Below, in pieces: positions 9,991-62,936 of a stretch of DNA of 64,000 bases. The notes beneath the pieces are model-generated. The model was not told the origin of the DNA. It saw only the letters and a list, made by a program, of their open reading frames with translations, and ran no database searches. The stretch comes from Paragordius varius. Its lineage: Eukaryota; Animalia; Nematomorpha. The stretch lies in assembly GCA_964247055.1 (NCBI GenBank), contig OZ176053.1, positions 8,556,001-8,620,000 of the forward strand. The letters are read 5' to 3'. Within the stretch, counting starts at the first letter, position 1; every line of letters begins with the position of its first letter. The position numbers and the translations under genes are program-made.

Positions 9991-11159
9991 ATGTATGTAA
10001 CGTAAGCGCACAAAATGCTAAAACGGAAAATCGCGATTGTAAGAAAATAGGTCACATATAAGACATGGTTTTCTTATGATTAAAACAAGGTCAGTTTTAA
10101 TTATATTTTTTTCATAAATAGCTATAATTTTAAAAAAATTTGAAATATAATAAGTTTAAGTATTGAAAAGTAATCATAAAATAAGTTTTTATACAATAAA
10201 AAGCAATAAATGTAGGGTACAAATAACTGTGTTGAAATGTGATAGAAAATTAAATAAGTCCTAACTTTGGGTGTTCAACTGTTAAAATATAAAATTCTTT
10301 TTAAATTAATATTTACACCATTTATTTTTAATAATTTTTAGTATAATAATGGTTATATTATGGTTTTGTGGCCTTTTTAGATAATTTAATGATTATAAAT
10401 TAACCTTTTCCAATTATTTATTATTGCATGACTTATAGAGAAAATACAACAGAACTAAGGCGGGTTAAAACACATATATAATATTAATTGAAAAAAGGCT
10501 TATGTTTCTTACGTTAAATTTATCAAAAATTAAGCGTTTTTATTAATTGGAAAAACGTTTCTAGACTGGGAATTATAATAGTGTTAAATTGTAATTAACA
10601 TATTAAAGAAAAAAATTTCTCCTAACATTTTTATTTTTAGTTTTTTTGAGAACTTTTAATGACATTCATATTAATTACATTTTATTTAAAATATTTTAAA
10701 AGTTTTCAATATTAGAGGAACAAACATAGAAAAGTGACATCTATTTATAAGGTTGGCAACAAGATATATATAGGTTTATAATTGATATAATTAATATTTT
10801 AAATGCTAAATGTGGATTATAAAGCCAAACGGGACCAGGGTTTTGTAACATTTCATGACTTTTTTGATTCTTTGTACGCGATGACATATTGGGTAGTTTT
10901 ATATCCCACAGCTATGTCTTGTCAATAAACTACTCTTTTAAAAGTTATTTTTATTTAAATTAATTAATAAATTCTCTTCTTTAGATAAAAAGTTTATATT
11001 TTTTACAGTTTTGTAACTTTTAGAGTCTAAAATTGGGACAGCTCCAAAGCATGATTCTCCTTAACAGCTGATTAATCAATAAACATGTTTTTGCTGGTTA
11101 AATGAAATTTTAAAAAGCTTCTAAAATTTATTATTTACATTTTCTTTTTATAAAAAATT

Positions 11160-24664: not shown

Positions 24665-25204
24665 ATGAAGTTTTACCAAAATTTAATTTTAGGATTGATT
24701 TGTGTGCTTTTAGCGGCTTCAAAATATATCCAGGCCACGGTAAAAGAATTGTCAAAGTCGATGGCAAAGTAATTTTTTATTGATATATAAGGTTCATCCA
24801 TTTATCAATAATAAAGCTGCTGCGATGCATTTGAATAAAACAAATCCTCGTAAAGTTCATTGGACTGTTTTGTATCGTCGAAAGCATAAAAAGGGATTGC
24901 AAGAAGAAACTACTAAAAAACGCACTAGGAAAGTTACTAAATTTCAACGAGCCATTGTTGGTGCCTCATTAACCGAAATTATGGCTAGACGCAATCAAAA
25001 ACCTGAAATACGTAGAGCTCAAAGGGAACAAGCTATTAAGTTATATATTATTAGTAATTATAGAGCTGCCAAAGAAAAAGTTCAGAAAGTTAAAAAACCA
25101 GTAGTTAAGGTACATTAAATTATATATATTTTTAGGAAAAATCAAAAGTGAAAGCTACTCAGAAGGTTATGAAACAAGCACCAAGAGTTGGGGGGAAACG
25201 ATAA
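24665..25204 (+). CDS. RPL24: 60S ribosomal protein L24 (eL24), 5 exons
   Basis: Spliced translation [31 protein letters not shown]...[18 protein letters not shown]...[10 protein letters not shown]...REQAIKAAKE...[12 protein letters not shown] introns at 24670-24692 (23 nt), 24769-24791 (23), 25040-25063 (24) and 25110-25135 (26) restore the frame. Confidence 0.97.
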
Positions 25205-41987: not shown

Positions 41988-44964
41988 TTAAATTATATAA
42001 AATATTTTTCTGTAAAATAATCGCAGCGGAAGTATATTTCGGTCACGATGTATCGTTGGGTTAGTACCTCGATATTCGTACAGTCGCAAAATTTTGAGGA
42101 AATTATAATTCAATTTTCGACAACGCTCCAAAAAAATATCTGCAATGGTTGTCATGAGAAAAAGCGATATATATGGATTTGGAATAGTGTGCTTTAATGT
42201 TCGGGTTTCTTGTAAATTGGTTGTAATGTTACCACACACTTCACGCAAAAGAGAATTGAAATTGTCAAGTTTTTTCTTTAGGGGTGTTAGCAAACGATCT
42301 TTGTTACGCCATACTGAGAGGACATCGTTAGATGCTAAATTGTGCTAAATAAATGTAATAAAGCTAGTAAAATTGTTTGATCCGAAAATTAGATGTAAAT
42401 AAATTTTTATTTAGCAATATAATAACCTTGATAAAATTTTATGATATACAGATCATAAATGCTGTTTTTGTTTAAAAAAATGTGTTAAATTTTGGATTCC
42501 CTAAAATGATATTTTGTTATCCAAAAAACAGGGTCCAACGCTTTATAATGCAAAAAACATACTGCGCAAAATATTATTATCGTTATTTTGCATATCTTAA
42601 ATATGGATTGATCCTAACATTTTTATCCTATCCAAAAATATTGAAAATTTACGGAAAGAGTGTAAATTATTTTACTTCCATTTGTCTTACCTATATTTTT
42701 TGATTTTAAGAAAATTAAATATACACCATATGTTTATGCAAAAATATAATTAAACAGTTTGGTAATTTAAATATTTAATTGAAGGCGTTTTTGGGGTTCT
42801 TCTATTCAAAGAGAATAATATATGTAGGTTTTATTAATGCTATCTCGTAGATGGCAAGGCGGTTTTTTTAAAACTTTAATTTTATAAAGTAAAAGGTAAA
42901 TGGGTATATAAATTTATTTCCCCCAAATAACTAGGGGCTACATTTGAAAAAGGTAGAGATATAACACTATTACTTTTTTAAATGAAAAAAACCAAATGCT
43001 TTTACCAAATATTATAACAACTAAAACCTTTTGGATTTCGAAACACATGGTATTTAAACTGTAAGAAAAAACCATAAATTGTTTTTGGACTTTACACTAC
43101 ACATAAGTGAAAAAGAAGCTATATAACGAACCAATTAACAAAAATTTATAAACAATAAGAATATATTAACTCATTTATTATGATAAAAAAAAGGTTTTTA
43201 CACCCACACACACAAGAAATTATTGGATAAACTGTAGGCAGGAACATAAAAGAGAATCATTCATGCTATGAAACCATAATAAATTTATTAATAATGAAAA
43301 AAGATTCTTTGGACAAGTCCACTTTAATTTTAAAACGATATTACAAATTGTTTACCTGAGAGAGCTAACTATTATTGCCAAATATTCAAATATAAATACA
43401 CACTGGAAAAATATAATTAGCAGTTATTTACAATAAAATAAATAAAAGGTGGTAGCATTATATAAATATTGAGGTGGACATACTTTTAATAAAATTTCAT
43501 TGGGTAAGAGGACATTATTTTGAATCGTGTGAAAAGGAATGCTCCGTATTAAATTAACTTGACCTATTGCATCGCACACATGATTGGATAACATTAAAGA
43601 TTCTTTGGTATCACATTCTAAATAAATAAAGTGTGTGTCATTTTATTAAATTTAAGCATTAATCCACTAAAATAACATTAAATAATAATTATTTACGAAT
43701 GATATAAATTTAAGGAATTATATATAAAAGTATTATAATATACCTATTACACCCCAAATTCACCCTAAAAATGAAATATACCTTTTTTCGGGCTAATATA
43801 ACTCATCATTATTATAAAGTATATCTTTATGACACAAAATTTATTATTTTTTCAGTATTATATTTATTATTATTAAAGGAAATTTTTTAAAAATATAGGT
43901 ATTCTGATATAAAACAAATATTTTATTTTTAAATTGTTTAATTGTGTGTAAATGGTTAATACATTTATTCAATCTAACATAATTTTTCTCCAAACTCATT
44001 CATTTAAAATCAATATTAATTAATTAAATAAAACTTTGTAAGGGTCCATTAATCTTATCCTGAAAACGCTCAAAACAAGAACTTTCTAGCATTTATGGAA
44101 CAATATAATAAAAAACAATGATGATTATATAAAGCTTTAATAATTTTTATGCGTTATATATTTAAATAATTTAAACTAGGACAGAAAAAGAAATATTAAA
44201 AATTAAGCGACCAAACATCTTTAAAAGGCTAAAAAACTATTTTATAAGGTTTAATTAAAAATAAGTAAGGAGTTAGGTGGATGATTTTGATTAAGTTATT
44301 ACCAGTTAATTTATTTTGATTCTAAATAAATGGTGAGTTTTATCAAAAATATATATTAAACTTAAATACTAAAATTAAGCTTATTTTTCTATTTAATTTT
44401 AGGTTTAAATAATTCATGAGATTAATTTAGTAAAAAGTTTAATCAATTTACTTAACATTTTAAGTGGTATTTGATATAAGGGTAATTGTATTGATCGATG
44501 GTATTTTAAGTAATTATCCAATGTAACAAATGATAAATTATTTGTGTCCTTTCTTGCATTAATCATAGCACCTAAAAGGTTTGTATTTTCTTCGTCTTTA
44601 GGTATAAACTAAAATTATTTTTTATATTTTGATATACATAGAAAAGACTTTGGGCCACTGGATTTACAGGTGGTGGGGAACGAGCAGATAAATTTTTTAT
44701 AGTTTCATTCCAAAATGTGTATCTAATGTTTGCCAAATCTTTATTGCTTGTATTCTCTAAAATATGAATTTAATATACCAACAATCTGATTTAACAATAT
44801 ATTAAAAGCTTGTAGGGTAAAAATTGGGGCTTTAACAATCTTGGGTGCTAATAGATTGCAAACATATCGTTCATAATCATAAACCCTATCATATATACAT
44901 GGCTTATTAACTTGGATTGATGGACACAATAATTTAAAATACTTTCCACATTTATCGTTGCCAT
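41988..44964 (-). CDS. NDUFAF6: complex I assembly factor 6 (squalene/phytoene-synthase-like fold)
   Basis: Spliced MATINVESILNYCVHQSKVYDYERYVCNLLAP...IFTLQAFNILL...IRYTFWNETIKN...PVAQSL...GQVNLIRSIPFH...LPNEILLKHNL...RNILPLRLFY. Introns 44911-44886 (26 nt), 44778-44757 (22), 44637-44609 (29), then longer ones. Exons at approx 43617-43484 and 42344-41988. Confidence 0.88.
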
Positions 44965-45843
44965 ATGATTTTACATCCGCATGCTATTGAAATCTCGCTT
45001 ATATTTTATAGCAGTGGTGAGTAAAAAATTTATGTCAGTAGAGACATCTCAAAGAGTAACTGGAGATTGGTGGAACGAACGCGGTATTTACAAGGCCCTA
45101 CATTCACTAAATGGATTAAGAGTTTCAATTTTTGGGCTTACAATTAGGTTCCTCTCATAGCGCAAACATTAACGAAAAACGAAACAAGACCTTTTGACTT
45201 ACAAGGCAAGAAAATCTTAGATATTGGTTGTGGCGGTGGAATATTAACGGAGGTATAGAACTGAGACTTAAATTTAGCCATTAGCAAACATGGGCGCCAC
45301 TGTAATAGGCATAGATACAGAAGAGAATTTGGATATTGCACGGCAACACAAATCGTCGCTTAATAAAAATGTGCAAGAAAACATAACATACATTTCAAAA
45401 ACTATAGAAGACTTTTCTTTAAAAAATCCAAGAAGTGTGGATGCATGTGTTGCATCTGAAGTCGTCGAACATGTTGATAATTTGGATTCCTTCTTACAAG
45501 GGTGTTGTGATTCCGTTAAAGTAACAATACATTGCAATAATTAGCCAGGAGGTTTTTTGATTATTACCACCCTTAATCGAACGTTTTTGTCCAAAATATT
45601 GGCAATATATGTAGCCGAATATATTTTACAATTAGTTGAAAGAGGTATACATGATTGGAATAAATTTGTCAAACCAGAGTACATAAAAGAATTTATTGAA
45701 AAAAGTAATTTATTAATTAATATTATAAAGATGGTTTTGTGGTAACCAAATTATATGGTATGCTATACAATCCCTTGAGCAATAAATGGTCTTGGATCTC
45801 TCCGACTCATGTTAATTATGCATTATGTGCAAAAAAATTATAA
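44965..45843 (+). CDS. COQ3: ubiquinone biosynthesis O-methyltransferase; 5' end ambiguous (ATG 44965, 44981 or 45032)
   Basis: GDWWNERGIYKALHSLNGLRVPLI, SAM motif ILDIGCGGGILTEPLA, VASEVVEHV, KPGG..ITTLNRT, HDWNKFVKPE, YNPLSNKWSW. Introns 45122-45147 (26 nt), 45253-45277 (25), 45521-45544 (24), 45705-45730 (26); stop TAA 45841-45843. Confidence 0.95.
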
Positions 45844-46101
45844 TTTTGTATCATCAATAAAGTTCTCCATTAATTTTGGTATTATTTGATGTTGATTTGT
45901 CTAATTATATATTATAAACAAAAACCTCTATAATATTAATTTGGTCTGTTATTAATTTTCTGAATTCCACCAGTGCATTTTCTGCCTTTTCGTACAAATG
46001 TAGTTGCTTGTAATTAAGGTTCAATTTCTCCCGAAGTTGTAATTTTAAAAGAGGTACATTAACGTTATCCATTTGTGTAAATGTGTGTATGAATAAATAG
46101 A

Positions 46102-49100
46102 ATGGAACGAGAAAAAACTTTGTTAAAATGGGTTTTTAAAATAATAGTTATAATAAGATTACAACCATTGTCCCGGACGCTACTATTAATGATTTACAGA
46201 ATGTTAATTTTTTGGATGATCTGTTTCATAAATAGTATAAAGTTTGGTAAATTTAGTTTTAAGCAGGAATCAAACCATGTTTTACCTATTGTATTAATTT
46301 TAATTCTAAATATAGGATGAGCCATTTGATTTGATACAAGAGATTTCTTCTCATCTGAATTGCGATTTATCGTACTTAAATGCTTTAGGTTACATTTTTT
46401 AAAATATTAAGATCCATCAATAATTTATATTAATATTTTGGAATTGTTTGTGCCTTGCGTAGTAAATTCTGATAATAAAGAAAGTATACGCTTAAATAAG
46501 TTTCAGAATACATAAATGATATTATGATGATGGATAAGGAAGATCAAGAAATAATTAAAGAAATTATAGTGCAAGTTTTTTCAATGAAAATAATTATTTT
46601 TTAGTATGAAACAAATGTTAAAAGCTCTCATCCTAAGGTGAACATAGTTTTAATTTTAAGATGGATACTTTAAAACGGCTACAAAATGAAATTTTAATAT
46701 TGACTCAAGATAAAAATGATCTTGTCACCAAGAACCAATTATTAATTGATGAGGTTGGACCATAAAATAATTTAGATAAATAATCTCAAATCGGAAAATA
46801 ATGTGATTAATCAAGATTTTACCAATGAAGACATTGATTTATGTAAAAATCAAATCCAAAAATTGACGAATGAACTTGCCAAATGCAAAGATGAGTTATA
46901 TAGATTGGATAATGGTTTGCATTATTTGCTTATTTAAAATGTTTTGCAACAATTATTATAACAATAAAAATTCTGGTTGTGTTACCTGATTTTTTGTGGA
47001 AGTTTTTTTTATTAAGTTAATTTTTTAATGTTGCGAGACAGTTAACTTATTTTGGACACTTCTTTTTGTAATGTTATAATGAATTATTATTACCCATTTA
47101 CAAATTAAGCCTTTTTATGGTATTTTATTGGTTAGAACTTTATAATTAATATAAGGGTTATTCAACACGCTTTTTTCGGTACGCAAAAGTGCTCTAAAAA
47201 ATGTTAAAAAAATAAAAAATTTGATTTGAATTAAAAATACACGATTAGTTGAAAGATAATCCAATGGCCCAAAATAAATAGCCACAAAGATTTTATGTTG
47301 GAAACGCCTGATTTTATAAATATAGGATAGCTTTTATGGACTAATACACGCATTTATTAGGTTTAATTAAAATTTAAATTAATTGGTTAAAACTATTTTG
47401 AATAGCAAACATTAATTTTTTATCAAATATTATTTAAAATCTACATTTTACGCGCTAATAAGCTCTTTTTTCCATATATTTATGTTACAAAGTTATATCT
47501 CATTGATATTTAAATTTATTTTTTTGTGTGATTAGCAAAAGATGATTATGAAACTCAAATAAGTGCACTTAACCGTGAAATTATTGGCTATAAGAAAAAA
47601 GTTTTTACAATGAATGAATATAAATTTATAGGAGGAAGAATTGTCTAATTTGGCAGTAGATGTACAAAAATATAAAGATGAATTGGATATCTACAAACAT
47701 TTGTCGGAAAAAATTGTAAAAATTTTATCAATTATTTACTTATTATTAATATAATGTATTATGTTTAATAATCGTAGAAAACCAAAATATAAGGGTAATC
47801 TACATTATGTATTTATAATTTAATTAAGCGCCATTTTTTTAATATCCATCAAATGTTAGTCTTCGAAATTGAAGGTAGCTGAATCGAGATAATTTTTTAT
47901 TGCTGTTTTCCAATCTTCTCTATTTTCCGCATCTTTTATTTTTATTTTGGCCTCAGTAAGATCATCATATTTAGTAGTGATCCAGCTTTTGAAGGGTCTG
48001 CCAGGCTTTATGCTAGATGTGGAGTAGGACATCATTATATGCATATAATTATCTGGTGGTCTACGATGGCAGCCCATCTTAGTCTTTTGGCTCTTAGAAA
48101 GGGGTCGCAATGATTTTGAGGATTTTATAGGGATCGAATTGATTATTAATATTATAGAGTTTAGGATTATGTACAAAATTGTTTAGGTATTTTGGATACA
48201 GAGTTTTAGAATTTACCAAGGTTAGACTTTGTCATGGGCCACTGTAGTTTAGCGCAGGACGTATAATGATAGAATATAACTGCGAATTCGTTACAAATTT
48301 GATGAATTTATTATTAATTATGTGTGTTTGTCATGTTTCCATTCTTCAGATGATCTGTGTTTGAGGCCATCACTGATACCTCCCTTGGCTATATAATCAC
48401 CCAATATTTGAAGTGGGTAACAGTTTCGTAATTTTTGTTCTGAGAGATTGCGTTTAAATTTGGATCTCGTGGGTAAGTTATCGATGCTTGAGCAAGTAAA
48501 GGCATCTACCCTAAGTGATTTTAAGTTGGTGCATTTCTTATGTATCCAGAAATTACATTTAGCACACAATATAATTTGCCTTCACAACTAGACTGCAAAT
48601 TCTACATGGGTACTTAATCGGCTTCATTATATTATTATACATTAATTTTGTTTAGCTGGGATCGATTTTGAGACCATGATTTTCCAAGCAATTTGTTCAT
48701 TTGTCAATAGATAGAATGAGACCGACTTCAGATGAATCCATTATAACAAGGTCATCTGCAAAGAGCAGTTCCCAGAGTAAACCCTCGCGAATATTCTTTG
48801 TAACCTCATCAATTATTATGATAAACAGTAAGGGACTCAGGACAGAACCTTGGTGCAGCGCTGAGTTTATATTGATGAAGAAATCATAGAAGGTTTTGAT
48901 ATGGGCTTTGCAGACGGAATATAGCACATTATGTTTTGGATAATCCATTCTTCAATCCATTTTCTTCTTAAGGCCCTAAATAAAATATATGATTTTGATC
49001 TGTTTTAATATATCCATTTTAGTGTTTTCAATTTAATAATTTATTGTTTATCGTTTAATTTCTTATACGATAAAATACATTACTTTGAAAACCAAATTAA

Positions 49101-60712: not shown

Positions 60713-62936
60713 ATGCTCGAAAATTTTAATCCTGAAGTATTTAAAATCGTAGACGAAAGGCCCGTAACTGCGGAAGAACTAGATGAGAATATTATTGATA
60801 TTATAGATGAAAGAGAGATTTTTGGTAATTAAAAAATGAAATTTTAGATTGGCTAAGAAAAATCAATGACCCTGAACACCCTTTGACATTAGAGCAGTTA
60901 AATGTTGTTGAAGAAAAAAATATCCATGTACTAATGTTTTAATTTTAGATTGATCAGAAAGATAAAGTAATTAGCGTTAGCTATACCCCTACTATTCCAC
61001 ATTGCAGCATGGCTACATTAATTGGGTTATCCATTAAAGTCAAATTACTTCGTACCCTCCCCCAAAGCTATAAAGTATATTTTTATTCAATATATTAAAA
61101 TTTAATCATATACATATGGTCAAAAACAACAAATAATTGCGATTTGTTTTTTATATTTAACATCAAATAAATCAGTCGTGCTCACCAAAATTTTTACTGA
61201 GCTGCAAGAAATACATTGTTTCTAGGGCCACACCATATGATACCAATAAAAATTTCATAGCAGTTTGACATATTTGCAGATTATTTATACTAAAATAAAT
61301 ATAAAAGGAAAAAGTCTCTTTTTAGGGCCGCGGTTTGAATACCCTTGCTTAATGGTTACCAAGATGTACCATGTTACGGATAGTATATATAGAAATAAAG
61401 GTTTTGCATTTTCTTTTTAGATTTAAAGCTGCTATAGTTTTCCACAATGAAGAGCCAATTTTTTTGGTTCTTGGTTTAACATTAGATTTTTTTGTTTAAT
61501 TATAAGATAAAGTATTTTTGTGTCATCGGCTACTGTACTATTTCGTGTAATTGTAACGAAGTGTGTTTTCATTTTTTGGATACGGTCAAGATTAATGCGT
61601 GTCGATATCGTATTTAATTAATTAACCAATAAAATGACCTTGCTCTCTGTGCTCATTAATTTTATAAAATATAACACATGTTTTAAATTGATTAAAATTC
61701 TCCACTTAAGAAATTTATATATTAACTGGATTTATAACGAAGCCATTTGTTTCCCCCACTATTGTTTCGGAATTAGAATTTTTAAAACTATGACATTACT
61801 TTTTTGTACTAATTTACATTTTGCAGTAATTTTATATCCCAAAGCTCAATTTTGTCAATAAATTTGGAAAGTTATTTTATTAAAAATTTAATTATCATAC
61901 ATTTTTAGCTTGTATTTTTTACAGTTTTCTCCTCCAAAACACGATTGAGAACAGCTGCTATTAAAATTACATACTTTTACATTTACTGACCATAAAATAC
62001 ATTGTTTGCTTGCATTGTAAGATTCAAAAAAATTATAGAATTAAAATGGCTGCAAAAAAGTTTGAGATGCGGATTTTTTTACTTAACAAAAAAAATTTTT
62101 TGTATTATGCCCCTAAAAGCTAAAGAAAGCATATTTTAAATTCGTCTTAATATCTTAAAAATTTTCTAAGATATTCAAATTTTAATTCGCTTTGGGATAT
62201 AAAACTACTCCAAAAGATAATGGAGTGTTAAGTTTAAGCAATATTCACATAAGGTTGTCATATACTTATGGGCTAATTGAAAAAAGACACTTAACTAAAA
62301 GCTACGCCTTTATATTTGGTATTTAGGACCAATATTTTATTATATAGTCTAAAAATTAATTAGTATTTGTGGGCGCTTATTGAAAACAAAGCCAATTTTT
62401 AAACAAACGATTGATATATGTAGCTTGACGATGAGCATCGCATTTAAATAAAATATTTGCTTTTATATTTGAAACATTAGAAAGGTTTTATGCTAAATTG
62501 CTTCAAAGCCCAGTACATACATTTTTATTAATATATTAAAAATTAAGAGATGCAAAGAACACAAATTTTATAAATAGATTAGATATAAGCAAATTATACT
62601 AGAAATTAATTAATATACTGTTTTTTGTCGGTCGCATTTATATAATTCTTGTAAAAATGAAAATTTGGGATTATTATAAAAATAATTAATAAAAGTCATT
62701 TATTTTTATATTTTTTATTGTAATTTGAAACAAATAATAATTTTAAAAAATTGTTTTTTATAAGTTTTAATAAAATCTTAACATTGTATTGCATTTAGAT
62801 TGATGTGAAAATTAGCCCGGGAACACATTCTTCGGAAACAGCTATTAATAAGCAATTGGCTGATAAGGAAAGGGTCAGTGCAGCACTAGAAAATCCTCAT
62901 TTGATTGATGTTGTAAATAGATGTATTGCCGAATAA
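60713..62936 (+). CDS. CIAO2B: cytosolic Fe-S assembly component 2B (FAM96B/MIP18)
   Basis: [10 protein letters not shown]...[25 protein letters not shown]...[27 protein letters not shown]...[36 protein letters not shown]. Introns 60825-60847 (23 nt), 60928-60948 (21), 61075-62798 (1724). Confidence 0.96.

Follow-up and report, generated by a model that had tools for sequence, protein, structure and literature searches.

Divergent gene pairs and the NDUFAF6/COQ3 locus

Bidirectional gene pairs that are served by a short common promoter, with divergent transcription starts less than 1 kb apart, are known from mammals and compact eukaryotes. Like these, an NDUFAF6-like gene and COQ3 of the hairworm Paragordius varius are divergent, with start codons within 100 bp of each other. 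Both are housekeeping, mitochondria-related genes, and the elements of their promoters would have to be common to the two or interleaved. The distance between the two ATGs (0–67 bp, likeliest 16 bp) is at the extreme short end for bidirectional pairs. Unlike the pairs of compact genomes, this one sits in a genome that otherwise holds kilobase introns and repeats.

Each member of the pair also has described relatives. COQ3 resembles the UbiG family (TIGR01983) in being collinear across the whole profile, in carrying the SAM motif LDIGCGGG and in having three introns placed as in COQ3 of Gordionus sp. It differs in its very short N-terminal extension, with 29 residues before the WW motif in the favoured gene model where the median over 169 homologues is 57, and its introns have shrunk to 24–26 nt. 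NDUFAF6 belongs to the SQS_PSY family, and its Drosophila orthologue, Sicily, is reported from the cytoplasm as well as from mitochondria, with a co-chaperone role in the cytosol (PMC6339878). The NDUFAF6-like gene of P. varius has partial, sub-threshold but collinear SQS_PSY matches, one N-terminal and one central; just 11 residues precede its conserved region, none of them basic. Ultra-short spliceosomal introns (<30 nt) are the remaining point of comparison: the locus has seven, three of which occupy the positions of 40–100 nt introns in Gordionus.

The two genes were found by direct reading and translation of a 64-kb window, by which we mean the whole 64,000-nt stretch of contig OZ176053.1 that was analysed. 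NDUFAF6 (minus strand) and COQ3 (plus strand) lie head-to-head, almost without spacer, in a very AT-rich genome (27% GC). The gap between their ATGs is 0, 16 or 67 nt, set by the COQ3 start that is chosen, and what the locus poses is chiefly a question of gene models. On balance, COQ3 appears to start at ATG 44981, 16 bp from the NDUFAF6 ATG. Elsewhere in the window, a second divergent pair was observed, with about 349 bp separating its ATGs.

COQ3 gene structure and identity

The plus-strand gene has the following features.

44981–45121, plus strand: first coding exon in the favoured model, an uninterrupted frame (start ATG 44981, alternative ATG 45032)
45122–45147, plus strand: micro-intron 1, 26 nt, needed by the frame; its removal brings ...HSLNGLR next to VPLIAQTL..., the flanking exons are collinear on UbiG, and it is absent in Gordionus
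45148–45252, 45278–45520, 45545–45704 and 45731–45843 (including the stop), plus strand: remaining exons, with micro-introns of 25, 24 and 26 nt

When the exons were searched singly against TIGR01983 (NCBIfam), all five gave collinear matches at profile positions 3–29, 32–65, 66–144, 145–196 and 200–228. Their scores (19.1 + 28 + 56.1 + 58.3 + 19.4 bits) can only be summed roughly against the whole-protein cut-off of 102.95, which no exon passes alone. Profile position 3 falls on residue 21, at 45041. A class I SAM-binding motif (D/E-x-G-x-G-x-G) is present in exon 2 as LDIGCGGGILTE, and exon 3 matches Methyltransf_11/12/25 (Pfam). All source-named proteins among the closest matches to exon 3 are ubiquinone biosynthesis O-methyltransferases; the top match is from the butterfly Leptosia nina and the second from Gordionus sp., with 48% identity across the whole exon. 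In a local BLASTP among the fetched proteins, Gordionus gave the best match to exon 3, and the first exon matched residues 17–56 of Gordionus COQ3 (E 2e-11). By its sequence, the plus-strand gene is COQ3. A PDB sequence search with exon 1 returned weak UbiG matches alone (E 1.7). A word-index protein search with exons 1 and 3 gave no candidates, and it also missed the genome's own open frames. Searching with Gordionus COQ3 identified no nearer hairworm relative or transcript.

The NDUFAF6-like gene

The minus-strand gene is read as follows.

44912–44964, minus strand: exon 1, MATINVESILNYCVHQS plus 2 nt; start at 44964–44962, TAA at 44973–44971 two codons upstream, codon-usage log-odds +3.8 bits
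44886–44911, minus strand: micro-intron 1, 26 nt, gttaat...gatag, which holds the frame from exon 1 to VYDYERYVCNLLAPK
44779–44885, minus strand: exon 2, matching Pfam SQS_PSY profile positions 4–37 (14 bits, E 0.042)
44757–44778, minus strand: micro-intron 2, 22 nt, required by the frame
44638–44756, minus strand: exon 3, open frame ...NTSNKDLANIRYTFWNETIKNL...
44609–44637, minus strand: micro-intron 3, 29 nt, required by the frame
44453–44608, minus strand: exon 4, 3' end approximate, open frame FIPKDEENTNLLGAMINARKD..., followed by an intron of about 0.8 kb
43483–43620, minus strand: exon 5, ends approximate, matching SQS_PSY profile positions 145–189 (24 bits, E 3.7e-5)

Further 3' exons probably run to a stop near 42938, the boundary between exons 5 and 6 being approximate. 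The SQS_PSY (PF00494) matches of exons 2 and 5 are collinear, each under the gathering score of 26. In the ESM Atlas, the first match to exon 5 was an 'NDUFAF6' cluster (0.89), which is a lead only. These two sub-threshold Pfam matches and the Atlas lead suggest that the gene is NDUFAF6-like. The N-terminal motif YC...YDYERY...L matches human NDUFAF6. Exons 3 and 4, searched singly, had no Pfam match, and a PDB sequence search with exon 5 gave nothing meaningful. An Atlas query with exon 4 returned HSP90 fragments, which were dismissed as spurious since the exon has no HSP90 match in Pfam.

The sequence-only reading had placed the NDUFAF6 start at 44964–44962 behind an in-frame stop, and translation bears this out with the TAA at 44973–44971. 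It is the only ATG from which the conserved YC..YDYERY region is reached with at most one micro-intron. The N-terminus has a composition score of -4.0 and a net charge of -1, and is not of the basic, acid-free kind expected of a presequence. In the sole reachable gene model, NDUFAF6 as predicted is without a presequence-like N-terminus. The TAA blocks all upstream-exon acceptors bar one weak purine-rich AG at 44943–44942, so an upstream exon could supply a presequence only through that single acceptor. NDUFAF6 would then be made without an N-terminal presequence, and some or all of its action may be cytosolic, as has been reported for the fly orthologue Sicily.

Micro-introns and the CATATG palindrome

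At the locus, the reading frame calls for seven GT-AG introns of 22–29 nt. Every sequencing run in which the locus was found is of DNA; contigs of four runs aligned to it cross all introns unspliced, one run carries a divergent haplotype, and the one RNA run examined gave no contig there. Positions 44886 and 45147 are the 3' ends of the genuine first micro-introns of NDUFAF6 and COQ3, each of 26 nt. Micro-introns at 5' ends are common here, and RPL24 has one after just 5 nt of coding sequence. Two further features bear on the start of COQ3.

44962–44967, both strands: palindrome CATATG, which contains the minus-strand ATG of NDUFAF6 and a plus-strand ATG at 44965–44967
45017–45038, plus strand: candidate intron gtgagt...gtcag, 22 nt, needed only if COQ3 starts in the palindrome

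It had been proposed that the two starts abut in the palindrome, with zero intergenic bases, and that COQ3 is brought into frame with ATG 44965 by splicing out 45017–45038. The parts of this proposal are all present. The segment gtgagtaaaaaatttatgtcag begins with GTGAGT at 45017 and has its AG at 45037–45038; its 22 nt and GT-AG ends fall within the genome's 21–32 nt class of introns, and its removal gives MILHPHAIEISLIFYSS joined to VETSQ..., in frame. The donor is of consensus type, the acceptor is CAG, and introns of 22 nt do exist at the locus, since NDUFAF6 intron 2 is of this length and required by the frame. The clustering of micro-introns at 5' ends, as in RPL24, also fits, and ATG 44965 would be the first AUG if transcription began upstream of it. 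Among random 76-nt sequences of the same composition, an in-frame ATG was reached through any 20–30 nt GT..AG in 4.9%, whereas a path with a GTRAGT donor occurred in 0.03%, a feature chosen post hoc. GTGAGT is a rare hexamer in a genome of 27% GC.

Nevertheless, of the three possible starts of COQ3 this one is the least parsimonious. Unlike the micro-introns of the locus, the candidate is not needed by the frame, which from ATG 44981 stays intact with the segment kept; plus-strand ATG 44965 reaches COQ3 only via an optional splice of 22 or 25 nt. Gordionus COQ3 has no intron at this place, its first exon being continuous. The GTG donor is also atypical: the candidate was compared with 16 convincing micro-introns (the seven at NDUFAF6/COQ3, eight picked by eye elsewhere in the window and the first intron of RPL24), in all of which the +3 base is A or T and in none G. 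The resulting protein, MILHPHAIEISLIFYSSVETSQ..., would have no presequence; its N-terminus contains one acidic and no basic residue, and has no local alignment with that of Gordionus. The codon-usage log-odds of the path are -4.3 bits. A COQ3 start in the palindrome is thus very unlikely, and the common CATATG is probably a coincidence. The plus-strand ATG would be a by-product of the palindrome around the NDUFAF6 start, and the most that its transcription could add is an upstream reading frame of 19 codons.

The start codon of COQ3

From ATG 44981, the predicted protein begins MLLKSRLYFIAVVSKKF, and the frame 44981–45121 opens with MLLKSRLYFIAVVSKKFMSVETSQRVTGDWWNERG.... The sequence-only reading had given this start a GAG acceptor; none is needed, as 44981–45121 is a single open frame in phase with the COQ3 domain without splicing. 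An unspliced in-frame ATG was found in 18.5% of random 76-nt sequences of the same composition.

The candidate N-termini were compared by a composition score for which the N-terminal 16 residues of 126 COQ3 orthologues served as training set. ATG 44981 scored +4.5, which is also the median for true COQ3 N-termini (n = 126; mean 4.3, sd 3.3), a value reached by 1% of internal 16-mers and by 8% of stop-free ATG-plus-16-codon stretches in the window. Gordionus COQ3 scored +3.7. The scores for ATG 44965 and ATG 45032 were -3.7 and -6.7 respectively, and the former falls under 97% of true COQ3 N-termini. With a net charge of +4 and no D or E, the N-terminus from ATG 44981 has the character taken for a presequence (basic, acid-free and hydrophobic or hydroxylated over the N-terminal 15–20 residues); those from 44965 and 45032 lack it. 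The earlier statement that both proteins have no obvious presequence therefore stands for NDUFAF6, and for COQ3 only if ATG 44965 or ATG 45032 is used; it fails with ATG 44981. MLLKSRLYFIAVVSKKF, which is short, basic and devoid of acidic residues, is probably of the mitochondrial-presequence type and resembles the Gordionus orthologue in composition. In residue order, no likeness between the two extensions beyond composition was detected (shuffle p = 0.55).

Codon usage puts the 44981 frame ahead of the 44965 frame by 3.6 bits. The 44981 extension itself scores no better than random open frames, the 16–17 codons before ATG 45032 giving too little power. Start context is weak at all three ATGs, with no purine at -3. 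Use of ATG 44981 requires a transcription start within 44966–44980 or leaky scanning beyond AUG 44965. An NRF-1-type site at CGCATGC around ATG 44981 was considered and dropped (three matches in the window versus 1.3 expected).

ATG 45032 had been named as an intron-free alternative in frame with COQ3, leaving a 67-nt gap, and translation verified its frame. It is preceded by an A-rich stretch, and no other start gives two promoters as much room. Position 3 of the UbiG profile falls at 45041. The protein would begin three residues ahead of the UbiG-type domain and be devoid of a presequence; several database COQ3 entries, perhaps truncated models, start at the domain too. Its use would take a transcription start between 44982 and 45031, or re-initiation after the 19-codon frame that runs from 44965 to a stop at 45022–45024. 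Against it, the N-terminus scores like internal sequence, and the 17 codons upstream are open and presequence-like. COQ3 works in mitochondria, and its orthologues have N-terminal extensions, as the position of the WW motif in the 169 homologues indicates. A start at ATG 45032 is hence regarded as unlikely.

The true 5' ends could also lie elsewhere, if a distant upstream exon or trans-spliced leader joined an acceptor such as, for COQ3, ttatattttatag followed by C at 45011/45012; the annotated starts would then be neither the true N-termini nor the mRNA starts. The acceptor ending at 45011 is good and T-rich, a further AG ends at 45014, and nematodes, the sister phylum of Nematomorpha, use spliced leaders. 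However, a micro-intron to the acceptor at 45011 is excluded, because there is no GT 20–32 nt upstream of it. Any long first intron would need to extend across the partner gene, although the usual first intron here is tiny, and for NDUFAF6 the in-frame TAA leaves the one purine-rich AG. Literature searches on Nematomorpha, for spliced leaders and for features of introns and intergenic DNA, were negative, spliced leaders in the phylum being unreported in the literature searched. Such distant 5' ends are improbable. With COQ3 starting at ATG 44981, the locus would, at somewhat better than even odds, be a bidirectional gene pair of the ordinary kind, though an extremely tight one, the first exon of COQ3 being unspliced.

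Promoters and 5' ends

The spacer is so short that each core promoter would be placed in the first coding exon of the other gene. Whichever of the three ATGs COQ3 uses, the geometry implies that core promoter sequence, 5' ends or both would have to overlap that exon. Two elements are candidates.

45003–45010, minus strand: TATAAAAT, 39–46 nt upstream of the NDUFAF6 ATG, in COQ3 codons 8–10 of the favoured model; putative promoter element
44933–44941, plus strand: TTTAAAATA, 24–32 nt upstream of 44965, in NDUFAF6 exon 1; a weak AT-rich motif, common by chance, with a putative promoter role

From base frequencies, a TATAAA is estimated to occur by chance in a 10-nt target of this composition in about 2% of cases. 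TATAAAAT, within COQ3 codons 8–10, would serve NDUFAF6 as a promoter element. The two transcripts would have 5' leaders of less than about 20 nt, or 5' ends that overlap. The motif GGTATAACTA showed no enrichment and is absent from the NDUFAF6/COQ3 junction. Earlier claims of promoters inside coding exons and of overlapping divergent transcription thus gain support from geometry, with 0, 16 or 67 nt between the ATGs, and to that extent by inference.

Comparison with Gordionus

In Gordionus, the first exon of COQ3 is one unbroken stretch that encodes a K-rich N-terminus, and no intron falls in the region. The COQ3 introns of 25, 24 and 26 nt in P. varius sit at the same codons as its introns of 40, 100 and 49 nt. 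No NDUFAF6-like sequence was detected within 10 kb either side of Gordionus COQ3 (tblastn with all NDUFAF6 exons, E above 0.05), and no called gene lies upstream of it. The conservation in relatives that had been suggested as a check is accordingly absent around Gordionus COQ3. Since the pairing is absent there, the idea of two respiratory genes kept together as a selected unit of co-regulation is left unsupported.

Significance for hairworm genomes

It is possible, though doubtful, that the locus reflects a genome-wide architecture in hairworms. Divergent genes would have start codons 0–20 bp apart and interleaved core promoters, with TATA-type elements in the partner's first coding exon and overlapping mRNA 5' ends. 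First exons would be doubly constrained, by protein code and by promoter, and some mitochondrial proteins, here NDUFAF6, would have no room for a presequence and use another route or the cytosol. A presequence-less NDUFAF6 would suit the cytosolic role reported in flies. For annotation of hairworm genomes, optional-looking micro-introns beside start codons can mislead gene models. If the spacing is truly 0–16 bp, the pair would be a test case for two RNA polymerase II promoters with no non-coding DNA between the genes, and could show whether animal coding exons double as core promoters.

Structure and identity of the two genes

COQ3 and an NDUFAF6-like gene lie head to head in the window, and the reading frame requires all seven of their accepted micro-introns (GT-AG introns of about 20-32 nt). 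Contigs from DNA runs were collinear and unspliced over all seven, as in one gapless contig spanning 44833-45834.

Features of the NDUFAF6-like gene and COQ3
44964-44912, minus: NDUFAF6-like exon 1
44911-44886, minus: NDUFAF6-like micro-intron 1, 26 nt
44778-44757, minus: NDUFAF6-like micro-intron 2, 22 nt
44637-44609, minus: NDUFAF6-like micro-intron 3, 29 nt
beyond micro-intron 3, minus: NDUFAF6-like long intron, containing a probable very high-copy repeat
45121, plus: 3' end of the first COQ3 coding exon
45122-45147, plus: COQ3 micro-intron 1, 26 nt
45253-45277, plus: COQ3 micro-intron, 25 nt
45521-45544, plus: COQ3 micro-intron, 24 nt
45705-45730, plus: COQ3 micro-intron, 26 nt
45843, plus: COQ3 stop

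The spliced models of both genes were searched exon by exon, not as joined proteins. The five COQ3 exons, each searched singly, gave collinear matches to NCBIfam TIGR01983 (UbiG/COQ3) that covered profile positions 3-228, with position 3 at 45041. Of the closest relatives found with the largest COQ3 exon, the second-ranked was COQ3 of the hairworm relative Gordionus sp., which was also the exon's top match in a local BLASTP among the proteins fetched. These relatives and the GC content (27% in the window, 26.9% in the Gordionus assembly) are consistent with a hairworm origin. On the minus strand, Pfam SQS_PSY matched exon 2 (profile positions 4-37, E 0.042) and exon 5 (positions 145-189, E 3.7e-5), and an Atlas look-up with exon 5 returned an NDUFAF6 cluster as top match (0.89). 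The gene is quite likely NDUFAF6, an identification weakened by the exon-by-exon searching.

In two DNA runs, about 230 nt of the long NDUFAF6 intron (43702-43935) reached a word depth close to 200,000, compared with about 700 in the flanks. Numerous contigs join or terminate in this segment. It occurs once in the window and probably represents a dispersed repeat of very high copy number. Public run X3, labelled as another organism, was identical to the window wherever the locus was covered, and run X4, from another sample bearing the matching species label, showed 23 differing positions and 4 gaps over 1.4 kb (44908-46305). The species labels of these runs may be mismatched with the source of the assembly.

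Start codon of COQ3

An exhaustive search of in-frame paths, with at most one GT-AG segment of 20-32 nt, gave three possible starts, which therefore lie 67, 16 or 0 nt from the NDUFAF6 ATG respectively.

Candidate COQ3 starts and N-terminal composition scores (log-odds, residues 2-17 of 126 long-extension COQ3 orthologues against their mature parts)
ATG 45032, plus: unspliced path; score -6.7
ATG 44981, plus: unspliced path; score +4.5
ATG 44965, plus: via 45017-45038 (22 nt) or 45014-45038 (25 nt); score -3.7
True COQ3 N-termini: mean 4.3, sd 3.3
Gordionus COQ3: score +3.7

The sequence-only reading proposed that both genes may start within one CATATG, with the 22-nt intron spliced. Its letters are correct: CATATG lies at 44962-44967, with the minus-strand ATG at 44964-44962 and an in-frame TAA at 44973-44971, and GTGAGT begins at 45017 with an AG at 45037-45038. 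Its GAG acceptor for ATG 44981 was an error: no acceptor is needed, as 44981-45121 translates unbroken.

The choice among starts was weighed on indirect, sequence-based evidence, which puts ATG 44981 at somewhat better than even. Only 1% of internal 16-mers score that high, and in the window as a whole the figure is only 8% for arbitrary stretches that begin with ATG and lack a stop. In codon usage its frame leads the 44965 frame by 3.6 bits, with a score no higher than that of random open frames. A start at ATG 45032 is unlikely, and an unseen upstream exon or leader is given the same low probability.

A start at ATG 44965 is less probable still. In its favour, the GTGAGT donor is rare at this base composition, and an in-frame path with so strong a donor arose in only 0.03% of random sequences, but one with any GT..AG arose in 4.9%. 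Micro-introns do occur at the very start of coding sequence: in RPL24 (24665-24692), ATGAA is followed by a 23-nt GT-AG micro-intron (24670-24692) and then G ATT GAT TTG TGT..., so a micro-intron is possible behind only 5 nt of coding sequence. Against this start, the frame does not require 45017-45038, and the N-terminal score falls far from the true mean. The candidate donor also has G at +3, a base absent from that position in 16 convincing micro-introns of the window, which carry A or T. Of these, seven belong to the present locus, one is the RPL24 first intron, and eight were chosen by eye for protein-like flanks, including those of a CIA2-like gene.

The N-terminal part of Gordionus COQ3 (XP_065315805.1) lacks an intron, its unbroken first exon encoding MKFKIKCAKYFGILKNY... 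Three introns fall at identical codons and phases in both species: 40, 100 and 49 nt in Gordionus (10283-10322, 10566-10665 and 10826-10874 of the fetched locus L001) against 25, 24 and 26 nt at 45253-45277, 45521-45544 and 45705-45730 respectively. In contrast, intron 45122-45147 has no counterpart there. Counting against ATG 44981, the extension from that start showed no order-level similarity to that of Gordionus (p = 0.55).

A second palindrome, GCATGC (44979-44984), contains ATG 44981-44983 and a minus-strand ATG (44982-44980), which opens a tiny frame, ATG CGG ATG TAA, upstream of the NDUFAF6 start. The CGCATGC core looks like one half of an NRF-1-type site but shows no enrichment in the window.

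Mitochondrial presequences

The conserved region of NDUFAF6 was reachable only from ATG 44964 in the in-frame path search. Acceptors upstream are blocked by the in-frame TAA two codons before the start, and the only AG within exon 1 (44943-44942) is purine-rich, against the T-rich acceptors used at the locus. The N-terminus is therefore MATINVESILN-YC...; it contains one acidic and no basic residues and has a composition score of -4.0. The proposal that both proteins lack presequences thus holds for NDUFAF6 at gene-model level and fails for COQ3 from ATG 44981; COQ3 probably retains a short presequence and NDUFAF6 probably has none. The fly orthologue Sicily is described as cytoplasmic and mitochondrial, and as a cytosolic co-chaperone (Zhang et al., 2013, as summarised in the review PMC6339878). 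On that summary, an NDUFAF6 form without a presequence has precedent.

Promoter geometry and conservation of the pair

The gap between the two ATGs is at most 67 bp whichever start is used. The junction holds two candidate TATA-like motifs:

45010-45003, minus: TATAAAAT, 39-46 nt upstream of the NDUFAF6 ATG, within COQ3 codons 8-10 if COQ3 starts at 44981
44933-44941, plus: TTTAAAATA, weaker, about 24-32 nt before 44965 on this strand, within NDUFAF6 exon 1

As a TATA box for NDUFAF6, TATAAAAT would place starts at roughly 44975-44982. If both motifs were used, the promoters would be interleaved, and the transcripts would either share up to about 20 nt or carry very short leaders. This layout is a prediction, because AT-rich motifs are common in the window.

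In the 10 kb flanking Gordionus COQ3 on each side, no NDUFAF6-like sequence was found, and no genes were called upstream of COQ3 there. The pairing is therefore lineage-specific, and the suggestion of a co-regulated, selected unit finds no support. A second divergent pair in the window, a MDKNKKK... gene (60363, minus) and a CIA2/FAM96-like gene (60713, plus; micro-introns 60825-60847, 23 nt, and 60928-60948, 21 nt), has about 349 nt between its ATGs, so near-zero spacing is not universal among divergent pairs. The abutment within CATATG is most likely a coincidence. What stands of it is a real and very tight head-to-head pair of NDUFAF6 and COQ3, an arrangement of an already known type.
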